Under the pieces are notes generated by a model that was not told the origin of the DNA, searched no databases, and worked only from the letters and a program-made list of their open reading frames with translations. From Macrostomum lignano (lineage: Eukaryota), in assembly GCA_002269645.1 (NCBI GenBank), contig NIVC01003566.1:35550-99549 (forward strand): a stretch of 64,000 nt of DNA, read 5' to 3'. Positions 15,800 to 53,505 of the stretch are shown in pieces. Position 1 is the stretch's first letter. Each line of letters starts with the position of its first letter. Position numbers and translations under genes: made by a program.

Positions 15800-45432
<29,633 letters not shown>

Positions 45433-45934: not shown

Positions 45935-48900
45935 TCAATCAGATTCTGATTCTTCGCCAGATACCATCGATGCAGCCAGGTGCACCTCCTCAACTGAGGG
46001 CGCGCTTGTGCGACCTGCAGAACAATTGGAAAGAATTTCATTCGATTCGGTTTAGCTTGGGGACACCTAACCTCACCTACCTAGGTCTGTCTACTCTACC
46101 ATTTCTTTCTGTAAAAGACACACACAGACAGGCAGACAGACAGGCAGACAGACAGGCAGGCAGACAGACAGACAGACAGACAGGCACTCACGCTCGCGTC
46201 CCCGCTCAACAATGGAGTTGGCCCGCATGGCCAGCCTGGCGGTGGCAGCGATGGCCTCCACCGGAGAGCCGTCCTGCCTCGCAGCCGCGTCTCCAGCCAC
46301 GTCGCCCTCGGCGCCACCAGAAGGATTAGCGAACGCGGTCGTCGCCGACCGAGTCACGGTGGACTCGTGCGGCATGAGTCGTTGCGGCGATCTGAACAGG
46401 TAGTTGCTAGGGTAGTGCCGCAGGTTGGTGACCCGCTGGGCGTAGATATCGGCGTAGCGCTCCAGCTGGTAGGCGAAGCTGGTCAGGCGGCCCCCGGACC
46501 GGAACAGCGAGCCCAAGAAGCCGTAGGCGGTGTCCATCTGGCGGACAACGTCGCGAATGTCGGCGCGAATGCGTTGGACCTCGTTAGCCGGCGGTCCCGG
46601 GTTCGAATCGCTGGCAGCTAGAGTGCAGTGAAGATACATTCGGCCCATCTCGGCTTCCAAGCGTTGCAGCCTCTCGAACAGCTGCTGGTCCTGCTTCCAC
46701 ACGAATAGCTCGTTCGCCAGTTCAGGAACAATGAGCAGGGTGCGCCAGCCGACCTTCTTGGACTTGATGATGTCGCCGAAGATGTGATCGCCTGCGTACA
46801 GCACGTCTTTGCCGCGGCAGCCGATTAGGCGGGAGAACTCGGCGCAGGAGCCTGCGGAATGTGATGGGGAATGTTTCTGTAAGCTCCTTGGGGCGTCAAT
46901 TTAGTTGCGCTATTGAGGGTGATAATTGATCCTTTTAATTAACCTGTGCAACTTCATCTAATAAGGCTTTCTAATCTTGCTAGGTGAGGTGTTAGTCAGA
47001 GATCTCATTGAGAAGGGAGAGATCTCATCGAGAAGGGAGAGATCTCATTGAGAAGGGAGATATCTCATTGAGAAGGGAGAGATCTCATTGAGAAGGGAGA
47101 GATCTCATCGAGAAGGGAGAGATCTCATTGAGAAAGAAGAGTCAGTTTTAAAAAAAATCGATATCCCCAATAGCTCTAATAGATTTACATGTGTAGCCAA
47201 TATGTTGCGTAAAATACTTTACAAAGCAGAATTCTACATGGACATAACAAGTTGGCGCACTTTAATTTTAACACAAATTTAAACACTGAAACTAAAATCA
47301 GATTAATTCACCTACCAATACGTCATAAAAAACAGATACCCTCAATATAGCTGTAATAGCTGTAACCCTCAAGATGCATATACATTGCCGATATGTAGCG
47401 CAAAATACTTTTCAAAGCGGATTTCTACATAGACTTAATAAAGTTAACAAACTTTGTTTCAATTGAAGCCACTCACCACCCGAATAGACCACGCCAGACT
47501 GCAGCGGGCCCATGTGAGTACCCAGCTTGAGCTTGCCGCTAGAGCGATCAACCACGCGCAGTAGGCTACCCTCGGCGAAGAACTTCGGCTTGCAGGCGCT
47601 AACTAATACGTAGTTGAATATGCCCACCCAGTCGGGGCCCAACAGGTAGGACATGAGAGCGTCAGTGTACCAATACTCGGAATTAGTCAGTAGAAACACC
47701 TTCGCACCCGTAGCCTTTAACTGCTCCAGTAGATCCAACAGATCCGAGTCGGTGTGAACAAACTCGTCGATCTGTTCAACGGTGAGACGTTTCAACGAGT
47801 CGTCGTTGTGAATTGCGTCTGCCGCGCCTCGAACGTCATTGAATAGGGAGCGGTACGAGATGTTGAGCTCCTGGGGATTGGAGGGACAGCACACAATAAC
47901 GGTGAGATAGGGTGAGAACGGGGAAAGCAGAAAGAATCATAGTGCCCTCAAACAGACCTTGTACACAATGCCGTTCCGTTCCACCGAAGCCTACGGCAGG
48001 GCCTTGAAGAACTCAATGATGGAGGCCATGCAGTAGATCTCCGGCAAATTAAACAGAGTATCGTACACATAGAACCTGTCGCTCAGCTGTACAAACTTAT
48101 TCTCGTACCAGGAGTGAAGCTCAGCGGACGGCACTACTGTTAGGCCAAATAGGCAGCTTAATAAATTGCCAAACGAATCCACTTTAAGTAGGCAGCCGCG
48201 ATCTTTGTCAAACCACAAGCCTCTGATAGGGAATGTGTGATCGTATTGGAATTTGAGTATCTCGCTGGGGTAGCCAATGTCAACCAGGCGGTTGAGCATT
48301 AAACGGAAGGCTGCAGATTCGTAGCTGGGTGATTTGTACTGGGCAAGGGTGTAGTCCATGTCGAATCCGTAGAACTTGATGCGGTCCAGCTGCAGACTGC
48401 GGTTCACGAATATTCTGGGCAGAGGTCAGTGGGGGAGGTGTGCACTGGTGAGGGATCTTTGTAGGCTAAACAATATTCATAAAGTACTTTGGCTGGACCA
48501 GCCTCCCAGTTCCTTAGTTGCTGGGCCAGCCTCCCAGATCCTCAGTTTCTGGGCCAGCCTCCCAGATCCTTAGTTGCTGGGCCAGCTTCCCAGTCCTTAG
48601 TTGCTGGGCCAGCCTCTCAGATCCTCAGTTGCTGGGCCAGCCTCCCAGATCCTTAGTTGCTGGGCCAGCCTCCCAGATCCTTAGTTGCTGGGCCAGCTTC
48701 CCAGTCCTTAGTTGCTGGGCCAGCCTCTCAGATCCTCAGTTGCTGGGCCAGCCTCCCAGATCCTCAGTTGCTCTGCCAGCCTCTCAGAGTGTCAGTTGCT
48801 GGGCCAGCCTCTTAGATCATCAGATGCTGGGCCAGCCTCCTAGAGTGTCAGTTGCTGGGCCAGCCTCCCAGATCCTTAGTTGCTGGGCCAGCCTCCCAGA

Positions 48901-49390
48901 GTGTCAGTTGCTGGGCCAGCCTCCCAGATCCTCAGTTGCTGGGCCAGCCTCCCAGATCCTCAGTTGCTGGGCCAGCCTCCCAGAGTGTCAGTTGCTGGGC
49001 CAGCCTCCCAGAGTGTCAGTTGCTGGGCCAGCCTCCCAGATCCTCAGTTGCTGGGCCAGCCTCCCAGATCCTCAGTTGCTGGGCCAGCCTCCCAGAGTGT
49101 CAGTTGCTGGGCCAGCCTCCTAGAGTGTCAGTTGCTGGGCCAGCCTCCCAGATCATCAGTTGCTGGGCCAGCCTCCCAGATCCTCAGTTGCTGGGCCAGC
49201 CTCCCAGATCCTCAGTTGCTGGGCCAGCCTCCCAGATCCTCAGTTGCTGGGCCATCACCCTTCATCGTCAAGCAATAAGCGACCATTCTCAAAAGCAAAG
49301 CACGCACCTGTGACCAGTCTCACGCTTAAGCAATTGAAATTCGGAAGACTTCTTCTCCGACCAAGTGTTGGCTCTGCTGTAGTAGTCCAT
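45935..49390 (-). CDS. NT5C2: Cytosolic purine 5'-nucleotidase cN-II (HAD family), 5 exons, 557 codons, with one internal TAG at codon ~169
   Basis: Exons (minus): 49308-49390, 47958-48414, 47477-47870, 46192-46851, 45935-46014. Motifs: HR-IFVNRSL, HAD motif I GFDMDYTLAQY, FLLTNS, KPKFF, YAGDHIFGDI, acidic C-terminus (GEESESD*). In-frame TAG at 47991-47993, so this may be a nonsense allele or pseudogene copy. Confidence 0.88.
47000..47135. repeat. 20-bp minisatellite GAGATCTCATTGAGAAGGGA, NT5C2 intron 3
   Basis: About 6 units. Confidence 0.9.
48490..49255. repeat. 28-bp minisatellite TCAGTTGCTGGGCCAGCCTCCCAGATCC, NT5C2 intron 1
   Basis: Tandem units. Confidence 0.94.
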
Positions 49391-49962: not shown

Positions 49963-52900
49963 TCACCAGTATTTGTCATCGACTAGCAGATTGTCGGCAT
50001 CTCCAGTCTGCCAGGTGCCAACAAAGCCAGGCCTCACTTGTCGTCTGGCTGTTAACTTGGCTGTTGATTCGGGATTTGAGTAGGATAATTCATGTAGGCG
50101 CGCTCTCTGGCGCTCTTTCACTGATGCAGCTGCTTTGTCGCCATTGCTTGCCTGCGTAAAATAGTTTTAGAGCGATTGGCGCTGAAATCCAGCCTCTGGC
50201 GCTAAAATCCAGCCTCTGGCGCTAAAATCTAGCCTGTGACGCCAAAATCTAGCCTCTGGTGCTAAAATCCAGTCTGTGACCCTAATATCTAGCCTGTGGC
50301 GCTAGTTTAGCCTGTGGCGCTAAAATCTAGCCTGTGGCCCCAAAATCTAGCTTGTGGCGCTAAAATTTAGTCTGTGACTTTGTGGCGCTAAAATTTAGTC
50401 TGTGACTTTGTGGCGCTAAAATTTAGTCTGTGACTTTGTGGCGCTAAAATTTAGTCTGTGACTTTGTGGCGCTAAAATTTAGTCTGTGACTTTGTGGCGC
50501 TAAAATTTAGTCTGTGACTTTGTGGCGCTAAAATTTAGTCTGTGACTTTGTGGCGCTAAAATTTAGTCTGTGACTTTGTGGCGCTAAAATTTAGTCTGTG
50601 ACTTTGTGGCGCTAAAATTTAGTCTGTGACTTTGTGGCGCTAAAATTTAGTCTGTGACTTTGTGGCGCTAAAATCTAGCCTGTGGCGCTAAAATCCAGTC
50701 TGTGGCGCTAAAATCCAGTCTGTGGCGCTAAAACCCAGCCTGTGGCGCTAAAATCCCGTCTGTGGTGCTAAAATCTAGCCTGTGGCGCCAAAATCTAGCT
50801 TGTGGCGCTGAAATTAGTTTGTGGCGCTAAAATCTAGCAGCTGTAACGCTAAAATCTAGCCTGGGGCGAAAATCTAGCTTGTGGCGCTGAAATCTAGTTT
50901 GTGGCGCTAAAATCTAGTCTGTGGCTCTAAAATCGAGTTTGTGGCGCTAAAATCCAGCCTGTGGCTCTAAAATCGAGTTTGTGGCGCTAAAATCCAGCCT
51001 GTGGCGCTAAAATCTAGCCTGTGGCGCTAATATCTAGCCTGTTGCGCTAATATCTAGTTTGTGGCGCTTTAAACCAGCCTGTGGTGCTAAAATCTTGTCT
51101 GTGGCGCCATAAACTAGCCTGTGGCGCCATGAACCAGCCTGTGGCTCTAAAATCTAACCTGTGGTGCTAAAATCTAGTCTGTGGCGCTATAAACCTGCCT
51201 GTGGCGCCATAAACCAGCTTGTGGCGCTAAAATCTAGTCTGTGGCGCTAAAATCTAGCCTGTGGCGCTAAAATCTAGTCTGTTTGCGCTAAAATCTAGTC
51301 TGTGGCGCCATAAACCTGCCTCTGGCGCCATAAACCTGCCTCTGGCGCCATAAACCAGCCTGTGGCGCTAAAATCTAGTCTGTGGCGCTAAAATCTAGTC
51401 TGTGGCGCTAAAATCTAGTCTGTGGCGCTAAAATCCGTCTGTGGCGCTAAAATCTAGTCTGTGGCGCTAAAATCTAGTCTGTGGCGCTAAAATCTAGCCT
51501 GTTGGCGCTAAAATCTAGCCTGCTCACCTGATCAGACCCATCGTCAGACTCCTTGCCCAGCTCGGGAGCTCGCACTCCCAGCTGAGACTCCCACTCCTCG
51601 GCAACCAGATGATACAATTTCAGGCAAGCGTCGGCGTCTTCAACTGAGTCGTGCTCGCGCTGCTGGATTCTCAGATTGAGCAGAGCGAGGGAGAGACTGC
51701 GCAGACTGGCCGGCCGCTTGCCCTGGGGCGGCATGCCAGCCTTGGCCTTGGCGTGGGGTGGGTGGGGTATCGGGTTGATTGGGCGATAATTGTTGTCTTG
51801 AAAACTGTAAGGCTCTGGGCGTGAGATAACGGATGGTGCATAAGGTGAGACAGGGGTGAGACAGGGGTGAGATAGGGGTGAGACAGGGGTGAGATAGGGG
51901 TGAGACAGGGGTGAGACAGGGGTGGGATAGGGGTGAGACAAGGTTGAGATTTAGGTAAGTAGGGGTGAATGAGATAGATGTGAGAAGGTGCGAGACAGGA
52001 GTGAGATTAGGTGAGATAGGTGTGAGATAGGGGTGAAACAGGGACTGTGAGGTATAGGTAAGATAGGGGTGAGAGTGAGATAGGGGTGAGATAGAATGAG
52101 ATATGGCTGAAACAGGTGTGAGACAGGGAGATAAGGGTGTGATATGGGTGAGAAAGAGATGAGAACACTCGGCAGTCCAGAAGGCTCACCTGCAGCAGGA
52201 CGCACTTGCTAGTGTCCCGAACCAGACCCTCCGGATGGTGCAATCGCAGCACTCTTAAATCGTTATGCAAAGCGTGACCAACTAGAACTCGACCCCGTAC
52301 AGCCCGACGGACCAGATCCTGAACGGCGTCGAATGGAAGGCCGCGTGAGAGGTCGGCAGCTCGAATGCCGCTCCATCTGGTTCGGTAATCTGTTACTGGC
52401 TCGTCTGGCAGGCACATCACATCTAGCAGCACCTGACAGGTGGATTGGGAGACAGATTAATGAGCATCGTCTACCATGCCTTATCTACTCCAGTCCATGA
52501 TCTACAGTCTACCCCAGTCCATGATCTACCGTCTACCCCAGTCCATGATCTACCGTCTACCCCAGTCCATGATCTACAGTCTACCCCAATCCATGATCTA
52601 CAGTCTACCCCAATCCATGATCTACAGTCTACCCCAATCCTTGATCTACCGTCTACCTCAATCCATGATCTACAGTCTACCCCAATCCATGATCTACAGT
52701 CTACCCTAACCCTGATTTACCATAACTATCTACCCCAAATCCATGATCTACCATAACTATCTATCCCCAATCCATGATCTACCATAACTATCTATCCCCA
52801 ATCCATGATCTACCATAACTATCTATCCCCAATCCATGATCTACCATAACTATCTATCCCCAATCCATGATCTACCATAACTATCTACTCATCCAATCCA

Positions 52901-53505
52901 TGATCTACCATAACTATCCACTCACCCAATCCATGATCTACCATAACTATCTACTCACCCAATCCATGATCTACCATAACTATCCACTCACCCAATCCAT
53001 GATCTACCATAACTATCTACTCATCCAATCCATGATCTACCATAACTATCCACTCACCCAATCCATGATCTACCATAACTATCTATCCCCAATCCATGAT
53101 CTACCATAACTATCTACTCACCCAATCCATGATCTACCATAACTATCTATCCCCAATCCATGATCTACCATAACTATCTACTCACCCAATATAGGCAATA
53201 ACCCATTCAAAAAGTCTCACATCTCCTCTCTCGTTGAGCACGCTAGCTCTTCCTAGAGCGCTAACGCTGCCTCTTGGCCCGGTGCCAACAAATTCGCAAT
53301 CAATAGCCACCACTTGAGTGGCTAAGCTGGGCTCATCTAGGCGAACAATGTTAGTTCTAATAATTGGCAGCGCCTTTGACCGAGAAAAGAAATTGTTACG
53401 AATATTTAAACGGGCACGTTTGACTCCGATGGACTGCTGCTTAGCTGATGCACTTAGTCGTTTTGTACTTCCGACAGCGCGTTTTTCATGAGAAGTTGAT
53501 GCCAT
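49963..53505 (-). CDS. DEDDh 3'-5' exonuclease, ISG20L2/AEN-like (REXO4-related family), 4 exons, ~311 aa
   Basis: Exons (minus): 53221-53505, 52190-52432, 51528-~51746, 49963-50151. ExoI VAIDCEFVGTGPRG, DYRTRWSGI, ExoII VGHALHNDL, RDTS, ExoIII HDSVEDA, ends DDKYW*. YRTRWSG and GTGP favour ISG20L2/AEN over REXO4. The exon 3 acceptor is ambiguous by 6 nt. Confidence 0.85.
50170..51520. repeat. 20/29-bp minisatellite TGTGGCGCTAAAATCTAGTC, exonuclease intron 3
   Basis: Tandem units with a homogeneous 29-bp sub-block at ~50355-50665. Confidence 0.94.
51840..52160. repeat. GGGGTGAGA(C/T)A array, exonuclease intron 2
   Basis: Tandem 13-bp units grading into degenerate copies. Confidence 0.85.
52470..53190. 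repeat. 27-bp to 33-bp CCAATCCATGATCTAC minisatellite, exonuclease intron 1
   Basis: Two related unit lengths. Confidence 0.93.

Follow-up and report, generated by a model that had tools for sequence, protein, structure and literature searches.

The cN-II locus and its gene model

The window, a stretch of 64,000 nucleotides of Macrostomum lignano DNA, carries on its minus strand a five-exon gene (45935-49390) that, judged by its sequence, encodes a cytosolic 5'-nucleotidase of the cN-II (NT5C2) type (PF05761, HAD superfamily). Over 3801 nt the gene region matches contig NIVC01003566.1 (GCA_002269645.1, assembly Mlig_3_7) at 100% identity, and this copy is found in GenBank as Mlig006192g4. The exons add up to 1674 nt, i.e. 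557 codons and a terminal TGA (45937-45935), and all four introns are of the GT-AG type. Exon 1 (49308-49390, with the ATG at 49390-49388) ends in a phase 2 donor (CACAG/gtgcgt), exon 2 (47958-48414, 457 nt) encodes HAD motif I (DMDYT, residues 46-50), exon 3 (47477-47870, 394 nt) motifs II and III (TNS, residues 242-244, and CKPKFF, residues 273-278), exon 4 (46192-46851, 660 nt) motif IV (GDHIFGD, residues 332-338) and exon 5 (45935-46014, 80 nt) the acidic tail that ends in SGEESESD. Exons 1 and 2 together measure 540 nt and the acceptor of exon 3 is therefore in phase 0. Most of intron 1 (893 nt) is occupied by a minisatellite of about 27 copies of a 28 bp unit (48492-49254), and intron 2 is 87 nt long. 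An Rfam scan of the window gave no matches, and no mention of the identifier Mlig006192 was found in the literature.

The gene product matched human cN-II structures with an E-value of 3.5e-145 over query residues 19-479 and showed 45-53% identity to animal cN-II proteins, with PF05761 on all matches. Human NT5C2 (PDB 2J2C, 5OPL) belongs to the same family and likewise has motifs I to IV and an acidic tail at its C-terminus, although the tail is short in M. lignano and a long run of Glu and Asp residues in the human protein.

A single in-frame stop in exon 2

Within the 557-codon frame we found one internal stop, a TAG at codon 169 (47991-47993, CTA on the plus strand). The minus strand at 47958-48000 reads ...GCC CTG CCG TAG GCT TCG GTG GAA CGG AAC GGC ATT GTG TAC AAG/gtctgt, which is translated as EFFKALP-stop-ASVERNGIVYK/ELNISYRSLFNDVR. 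The base 3' of the UAG is a G, followed by CUUCGGUG. HAD motif I alone lies upstream of the stop and motifs II-IV lie downstream, and the exon 2/3 and exon 3/4 junctions follow the stop at 33 nt and 427 nt, respectively. The alignment with human cN-II is free of gaps over this region and places the stop opposite the Arg of CPRYT, a variable, surface-type position (...NCPRYT... in human NT5C2). In 19 homologs the same column holds the sense residues Q, D, E, N, S or T and never Trp, with Gln as the most frequent residue in arthropod cN-II. A lone stop in an otherwise clean frame of 557 codons is no chance pattern; it is a genuine point lesion, and the gene that carries it is real. The earlier note had described an in-frame TAG in an otherwise intact NT5C2, positioned on one residue of a gap-free alignment and leaving catalytic motifs, splice sites and acidic tail untouched; our analysis bears this out on each point, including the gene identity, the exon structure and the translation around the stop.

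For the neighbouring GCN1 gene a full-length model exists in the window, and the RNase_T gene, for which no model was called, has its three main exons intact and free of stops, on which ground we rejected a region-wide decay of the contig. A reassigned genetic code was rejected as well, since the neighbours are intact (GCN1 full-length, RNase_T exons stop-free) and the terminal stops are standard (TGA in the window copy, TAA in one of its homeologs), while another homeolog has CAG at codon 169.

Comparison with the two homeologous copies

M. lignano is a recent hidden polyploid: in DV1, the inbred line that was sequenced, the genome is present in three diverged copies (S, L1 and L2). Three homeologous copies exist for about 85% of the genome, and the copies differ by SNPs at 1.1% of coding sequence (PMC10733133). 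We indeed found three collinear cN-II loci, each with the order Rad10 - RNase_T - cN-II - GCN1, and compared the window copy (g4, L001) with the copies g6 (L002) and g3 (L003). Divergence among the three is 0.8-1.25% in coding sequence. Intron 1 measures 1615 nt in g6 and 1703 nt in g3, exon 1 is 100% identical in the window copy and g3, and g6 is the copy that ends in TAA. In addition, the genome holds a second paralog family of cN-II (62% identity), represented by three full-length NCBI models of 579 aa each.

The homeologs differ at the lesion. The g3 copy has CAG (Gln) at codon 169 and encodes an intact product of 557 aa (PAA94340.1), and exon 2 of g6 is 100% identical to that of the window, TAG included. 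An uninterrupted frame over the whole domain is thus present in g3, whereas the window copy and g6 have it broken by the TAG at codon 169. The earlier note had suggested a comparison with paralogs and homeologs, and the intact g3 copy that came out of it counts against a recoding of the stop.

The two TAG-bearing contigs differ by about 5% in introns, but a tract of 563 bp surrounding the TAG (47878-48440) is identical in both, a sign that the stop in g4 and g6 has a common and recent origin. In a three-way comparison of the locus built by chained BLAST (about 8.5 kb of aligned columns) g3 differed from the other two at 153 sites, g6 at 60 and the window copy at 43. Since g3 is the odd one out at most sites, the two TAG copies are sisters, and this sisterhood would fit a single origin of the stop. 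The tree topology nevertheless switches within the gene: g6 and g3 agree over intron 3 and exon 4, where the window copy is the outlier.

On the terminal branches of the TAG copies we counted 4 nonsynonymous and 8 synonymous coding changes (n=12), fewer nonsynonymous changes than expected under neutrality given a nonsynonymous-site fraction of 0.765 (binomial P about 0.002-0.004). This ratio would mean continued constraint if all changes came after the stop. Because the topology switches inside the gene, however, most of these changes are probably older than the stop or were shifted by recombination.

Reliability of the assembled stop

The possibility that the TAG is an artefact of assembly or polishing deserves attention in this genome. 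In truth every copy could have CAG, or just one of them TAG, the T having been introduced or copied between contigs while the consensus was built or polished. It was reported that 93% of read pairs map to multiple places and that chimeric scaffolds make up 36% of the assembly length (PMC10733133), and Pilon polishing was done with Illumina and RNA-seq reads (PMC5730564). The g6 copy is a mosaic between the window copy and g3 inside the gene, and the older-assembly model that carries Gln at codon 169 has A497, where g3 has S497. Both public assemblies moreover go back to one set of PacBio reads, and the polishing of Mlig_3_7 involved short reads that map to more than one place (PMC5730564), so that the two contigs are not fully independent observations of the TAG. 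Nevertheless, the stop stands in two contigs that are about 5% apart in introns, and its effect is visible in gene models that make a detour around it and come from the older assembly, for which another assembler was used. Errors in long-read consensus sequences are mostly indels and rarely C-to-T substitutions, which counts against an artefact. Polishing may spread a T among copies but cannot create one without T-bearing reads, and therefore at least one real TAG copy is very likely. A pure assembly error as the source of the TAG is unlikely, and an artefact of either kind is in our judgement quite improbable.

Database models and possible splicing around the stop

The truncated product is already evident in the public annotation. 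The GenBank models of both TAG copies are 305 aa long and start from Met253 (ATG at 47654-47652 in exon 3), downstream of the stop (PAA50782.1 for the window copy); this is the longest ORF that remains if the transcript retains the stop. The annotation was built from RNA-seq-guided transcripts and TransDecoder (PMC5730564). The models from the older assembly show the same 2:1 pattern, with two models of 458 aa that lack codons 144-169 and one with Q169. The former two (UniRef A0A1I8HE05 and A0A1I8IJL2, both predicted) treat a GT...AG stretch of 78 nt (GTGTAC...CCGTAG, 47991-48068, minus strand) as an intron, the AG being supplied by the TAG itself.

If it were spliced, this in-frame mini-intron would rescue the gene by dropping codons 144-169 and yielding a protein of 531 aa. 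The two older models use precisely the resulting junction (SDRFY/ASVERNG), and the stretch has GT and AG boundaries and a length near that of the real intron 2. However, its donor GTGTAC does not have the G at +5 and the T at +6 that occur in all four real donors, and its removal would delete the near-invariant segment TLFNLPE(I/T)Y. The RNA-seq-guided GenBank models give the 305-aa ORF instead of the 531-aa ORF that such splicing would produce, and the same GT and AG are present in the intact CAG copy, so that the mini-intron is no specific rescue. The mini-intron is probably a workaround of the gene predictor and not a real splicing event, and we consider a rescue by this route highly unlikely.

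Other ways of splicing the stop out were rejected. As the earlier note had argued, the donor CC/GTAGGC just at the stop is in phase 2 and cannot join the phase 0 acceptor of exon 3, and it is in frame with no AG near the start of that exon. Skipping of exon 2 would lose 457 nt and shift the frame.

Protein databases were also searched for products of the TAG copies. No Macrostomum matches were found with a 179-aa query spanning the stop or with a 168-aa N-terminal query, in searches that apparently returned matches near the length of the query. Six hypothetical products were looked up as exact sequences (the 168-aa fragment, the full-length Q169 protein in the g4 and g6 backgrounds, the full-length W169 protein in the g4 background and downstream ORFs with a GTG start), likewise with no Macrostomum match, in a collection that appears to be devoid of transcript-derived fragments from Macrostomum.

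Recoding and truncated products

A stop codon in a gene that is otherwise intact may be decoded, and the TAG copies would then yield the full-length enzyme through programmed readthrough or through A-to-I editing of UAG to UIG (Trp). The intactness of the rest of the gene and the low number of nonsynonymous changes on the TAG branches speak for recoding, and ADARs, which such editing would involve, exist in flatworms (PMC8797187). The stop is not conserved, however, as the third homeolog has CAG, and the presence of this intact redundant copy makes a rescue needless. We found no readthrough motif 3' of the TAG: the context UAG-G followed by GCU UCG GUG resembles none of the known leaky contexts such as UGA-C, UGA-CUAG or UAG-CARYYA. 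A fold of the local 300 nt around the TAG was unremarkable (z = -1.0; 35 of 200 shuffled sequences folded equally well or better), and the absence of Trp from the column in the 19 homologs argues against editing. We therefore see no positive evidence for the recoding options that the earlier note had offered, and regard functional recoding as extremely improbable.

Comparison with established cases of recoding leads in the same direction. The readthrough genes of insects (Drosophila, Anopheles) likewise have an in-frame stop with sequence beyond it that appears to be coding. Their stops are conserved across species, usually add C-terminal extensions and are often UGA-C, whereas the present one is UAG-G, lies in the middle of an enzyme before three of the four catalytic motifs and is absent from a sister homeolog. 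In the amber/W site of hepatitis delta virus, as here, editing of the middle A would turn UAG into a Trp codon. Unlike at that site, there is no significant local double-stranded structure here in the 300-nt fold, Trp is never found at the column and the ancestral codon is CAG (Gln) and not UGG.

A variant of this reading holds that the TAG homeologs are alive, conditionally expressed, with the mid-ORF UAG decoded by readthrough or editing at a low or regulated level. This would, if true, explain both the clean downstream frame and the low ratio of nonsynonymous to synonymous changes on the TAG branches, but we give it hardly any weight.

Alternatively, the truncated products themselves might have acquired a new function, either the N-terminal fragment of 168 aa or the C-terminal ORF of 305 aa, the latter expressed by reinitiation at Met253. 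The annotation of the 305-aa ORF in GenBank and the clean frame after the stop could be taken in favour. Against this, the N-terminal fragment has HAD motif I only and the C-terminal ORF lacks the motif with the Asp nucleophile. Reinitiation past an upstream ORF of 168 codons is inefficient in eukaryotes, and the clean frame is accounted for by the youth of the lesion. A new function of this kind is most improbable.

A probable young nonsense mutation in a redundant copy

The TAG is very probably a genuine germline C-to-T nonsense mutation (Gln169, CAG to TAG) and a young knockout of a homeolog, tolerated through redundancy. This reading starts from direct observations: the lesion exists, two contigs carry it, the third copy is intact and the locus belongs to a genome present mostly in three copies. 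The substitution would have occurred in one homeologous lineage of the cN-II gene and would have given rise to the TAG in both g4 and g6, which may represent both variants of the large MLI1 chromosome, with g3 then belonging to S. Translation of the TAG copies is predicted to yield 168 residues that include no HAD motif but motif I, and neither this fragment nor the 305-aa product, without its nucleophile motif, is expected to be active as a nucleotidase. Nonsense-mediated decay is also predicted for the mRNA of the TAG copies. The loss would be tolerated because the function is supplied by the intact homeolog and by the second, three-copy cN-II paralog family, and the rest of the gene may look perfect because the lesion is young. 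Among the four explanations in the earlier note, recent nonsense or silencing of a homeolog is thus the one favoured, in view of the intact CAG copy; assembly error is unlikely, with the stop in two distinct contigs and older models detouring around it, and readthrough and A-to-I editing found no support.

The best reading of the locus is an early homeolog loss after genome duplication, and it resembles known ohnolog nonfunctionalisation and young unprocessed pseudogenes in several respects. There is one disabling point mutation, while introns, splice sites, synteny and promoter region are kept (the lesion copy retains its four GT-AG introns and the collinear neighbours Rad10, RNase_T and GCN1); an intact duplicate is present at a homeologous locus; and the genome was recently duplicated, with three subgenomes and about 1% coding divergence. 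It differs from these in that two copies out of the three assembled have the lesion, probably both MLI1 variants, and in that there is no second lesion so far.

Taken alone the significance is small, as it concerns another duplicate gene knocked out soon after whole-genome duplication. Recoding, if true, would be a rare case of stop decoding in the middle of an enzyme in a flatworm. The database models of this gene call for caution, since the 305-aa model is a leftover downstream ORF and the 458-aa models are built on a probably invented intron. Given a confirmed subgenome assignment, the C/T site may serve as a marker of the subgenome copies. The locus offers a cleanly dated, single-lesion loss of a homeolog in an animal neopolyploid, in which re-diploidisation is under active study.

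The premature stop in the cN-II gene

The cN-II gene lies on the minus strand (45935-49390) and consists of five exons (49390-49308, 48414-47958, 47870-47477, 46851-46192 and 46014-45935), which join to 1674 nt, that is 557 codons and a terminal TGA. Judged from its homologs, the product is a cN-II (NT5C2-type) cytosolic 5'-nucleotidase: PF05761 was found on every match, the identity to animal cN-II is 45-53%, human cN-II crystal-structure chains match with E = 3.5e-145 (residues 19-479), and the best matches are other Macrostomum lignano proteins (99% identity). The earlier note, made from the DNA alone, had described a single in-frame TAG in exon 2 of an otherwise intact NT5C2, and this description was borne out. 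The TAG at codon 169 (47991-47993), 33 nt short of the exon 2 end, is the only internal stop among the 557 codons; each of the four introns has GT-AG borders, and HAD motifs I-IV are present (DMDYT, residues 46-50; TNS, 242-244; CKPKFF, 273-278; GDHIFGD, 332-338), only motif I being located upstream of the stop. The joined model reproduced exactly the translation that had been given (EFFKALP*ASVERNGIVYK|ELNISYRSLFNDVR), and the alignment with human cN-II indeed runs without a gap across the stop, which is found opposite an Arg. Exons 1 and 2 together measure 540 nt and the exon 3 acceptor is therefore phase 0, so that the phase 2 donor CC|GTAGGC cannot rescue the frame, as the note had argued.

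Three homeologous copies of the locus

Macrostomum lignano is a hidden polyploid of recent origin, and about 85% of its Mlig_3_7 assembly occurs as three paralogous copies (Zadesenets et al. 2023, PMC10733133), namely subgenome S (small chromosomes) and L1 and L2, heterozygous variants of the large fused chromosome MLI1; the SNP divergence among copies amounts to 2.2% in total and to 1.1% within coding sequence, and chimeric scaffolds make up 36% of the assembly length (PMC10733133). At this locus we compared the three copies as DNA and found them collinear (Rad10 - RNase_T - cN-II - GCN1): the window copy (L001, g4, NIVC01003566.1), L002 (g6, NIVC01003772.1) and L003 (g3, NIVC01000012.1, PAA94340.1). 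The cN-II region of the window matches NIVC01003566.1 (assembly GCA_002269645.1, Mlig_3_7; 99.5 kb) with 100% identity over 3801 nt, and the window makes up the final 64 kb of this contig. L002 also carries the TAG, has an exon 2 that is 100% identical to that of the window and is, like the window copy, modelled as 305 aa from Met253, whereas L003 has CAG (Gln) at codon 169 and an uninterrupted model of 557 aa. Among the three coding sequences 24 codons vary, with pairwise differences of 13, 14 and 21 (0.8-1.25%), matching the published 1.1%. A more distant paralog (62% identity) is represented by three NCBI models of 579 aa.

The terminal stop is TAA in L002 (L002 11875-11877, homologous to window 45935-45937) and TGA in the other two copies. 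The window contig lacks a called model of the RNase_T-domain gene (51501-53505, minus strand), which measures 311 aa in both L002 and L003. The three main exons of this gene are nevertheless there, stop-free and with 94-100% amino-acid identity, suggesting a gap of the annotation rather than a lesion. For the convergent neighbour GCN1, the models comprise 2743 aa in both the window contig and L003 and 2367 aa in L002 (L002 12370-21877, the counterpart of window about 35935-45432, plus strand); the shorter model may reflect a further copy-specific lesion or an annotation difference.

The introns of cN-II are densely filled by minisatellites with copy numbers that vary between homeologs: a 28 bp x 27 array in intron 1 (48492-49254), a 20 bp x 7 array in intron 3 (46998-47134) and, at the beginning of intron 4, (ACAG)16 (46120-46183). 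Intron 1 is 893 nt long in L001, 1615 nt in L002 and 1703 nt in L003; for intron 4 the lengths are 177, 404 and 2012 nt in the same order. Over the whole 64 kb TRF gave 44 rows scoring at least 400, equivalent to about 30 distinct arrays. A 1.36-kb (GTCT)n microsatellite (25847-27203) and a 2-kb, 29-bp C/T-rich minisatellite (34889-36881) lie where the composition profile has its extreme AT-skew and GC-skew bins.

Database models and the reality of the TAG

The GenBank model of the window copy (Mlig006192g4, PAA50782.1) comprises 305 aa, starts at Met253 (ATG 47654-47652) and represents the longest ORF remaining downstream of the TAG. Transcript models of Mlig_3_7 were guided by RNA-seq and ORFs were called with TransDecoder (PMC5730564); a 305-aa call is what a stop-retaining transcript is expected to give, so the public annotation already implies the lesion. 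In the older ML2 assembly one model runs ...FFKALPQASVERNG, and two 458-aa models (A0A1I8HE05 and A0A1I8IJL2, UniRef/WormBase-type) pass from ...SDRFY straight to ASVERNG..., without codons 144-169. These 26 codons are cut by a 78-nt intron (47991-48068) whose AG is that of the premature TAG. This intron is probably invented, and the 458-aa and 305-aa entries both misrepresent the gene. The ML2 models show the same two-to-one split among copies as Mlig_3_7. The older model with Gln169, A0A1I8IA45, has Ala at codon 497 (window about 46328), where the Mlig_3_7 Gln169 copy L003 has Ser; the haplotype composition of the two assemblies thus disagrees at the single-base level.

The two assemblies share their PacBio reads, and multi-mapping Illumina and RNA-seq reads were used to polish Mlig_3_7 (PMC5730564), by which the count of two TAG contigs could be inflated. 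Nevertheless, the assembly error that the earlier note had listed is very unlikely: the C-to-T difference occurs in two contigs with about 5% intron divergence, its effect is mirrored in the models of an assembly made by another assembler, and real reads with a T almost certainly underlie it.

Direction, origin and age of the TAG

At the codon 169 column Gln is the most frequent residue in arthropod cN-II, and among 19 homologs D, E, N, S and T are seen besides; CAG is therefore ancestral, and one C-to-T transition gave the TAG. In a three-way alignment of the loci (about 8.5 kb of columns) L003 stood alone at 153 sites, L001 at 43 and L002 at 60. The two TAG contigs are thus more closely related to each other than to L003, which fits a single origin of the TAG in their common ancestor, plausibly the L lineage (MLI1), in which case L003 would be S. 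A 563-bp tract about the TAG (47878-48440) is identical in both TAG copies, outside of which their divergence within the gene reaches about 6% (intron 3). Near exon 2 the window equals L002; across intron 3 and most of exon 4 it is L002 and L003 that agree, which leaves the window copy as outlier with about 45 differing sites and several indels (window 46190-47480, L002 10178-11393, L003 12725-13941). This switch of topology indicates that the subgenome copies have recombined or undergone gene conversion, or else that a contig is haplotype-switched (chimeric), the latter a caution raised for Mlig_3_7 before (PMC10733133). Given the identical tract and the switching topology, the stop is probably younger than most of the divergence among the copies.

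Selection, recoding and splicing

On the L001 branch we counted 4 nonsynonymous and 6 synonymous changes, on the L002 branch 0 and 2 (and the TGA-to-TAA stop switch) and on the L003 branch 2 and 8 (and the CAG/TAG difference). The 4/12 nonsynonymous changes on the TAG branches are below the neutral expectation (nonsynonymous-site fraction 0.765; P about 0.002-0.004) and, taken at face value, would mean constraint after the stop, yet most of this divergence is probably older than the stop and the test therefore lacks real power. It is the only observation that keeps functional recoding alive, which the earlier note had proposed as readthrough or A-to-I editing and for which we see a minimal chance. 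A G stands directly after the UAG, and the codons behind the stop (GCU UCG GUG) correspond to none of the known leaky readthrough contexts. The 300-nt RNA centred on the TAG folds with z = -1.0, and 35/200 shuffles fold equally well. Editing is possible in principle, as flatworms possess ADARs (PMC8797187), but it would yield Trp, never seen at this column in the 19 homologs, and L003 has CAG. The genetic code at the locus is standard; a reassigned code was ruled out by the CAG of the sister copy, the terminal TGA/TAA stops and the intact neighbouring genes.

Rescue by splicing out the 78-nt GT...AG stretch, as in the older models, is extremely improbable: the donor GTGTAC lacks the +5 G and +6 T common to 4/4 real donors, the near-invariant TLFNLPE segment would be lost, and the intact CAG copy has the same GT and AG.

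Fate of the TAG copies

The TAG is very probably a real single nonsense mutation and an early stage in the loss of a duplicate gene from a neopolyploid genome, the option of the earlier note (a recent nonsense allele or homeolog silencing) that the intact CAG homeolog and the identical tract at the TAG favour. A C-to-T change in the common ancestor of L001 and L002 would have turned CAG (Gln169) into TAG, ending translation after 168 residues. That a truncated product functions is hardly conceivable, since neither the 168-residue fragment nor the 305-aa downstream ORF has a complete HAD active site. Exon junctions follow the stop at distances of 427 and 1087 nt, and the mRNA of the TAG copies is therefore, by the vertebrate rule, a predicted target of nonsense-mediated decay. 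The function of cN-II would be covered by the intact homeolog and the further paralog family, and with these in place the TAG would represent ordinary duplicate-gene loss.
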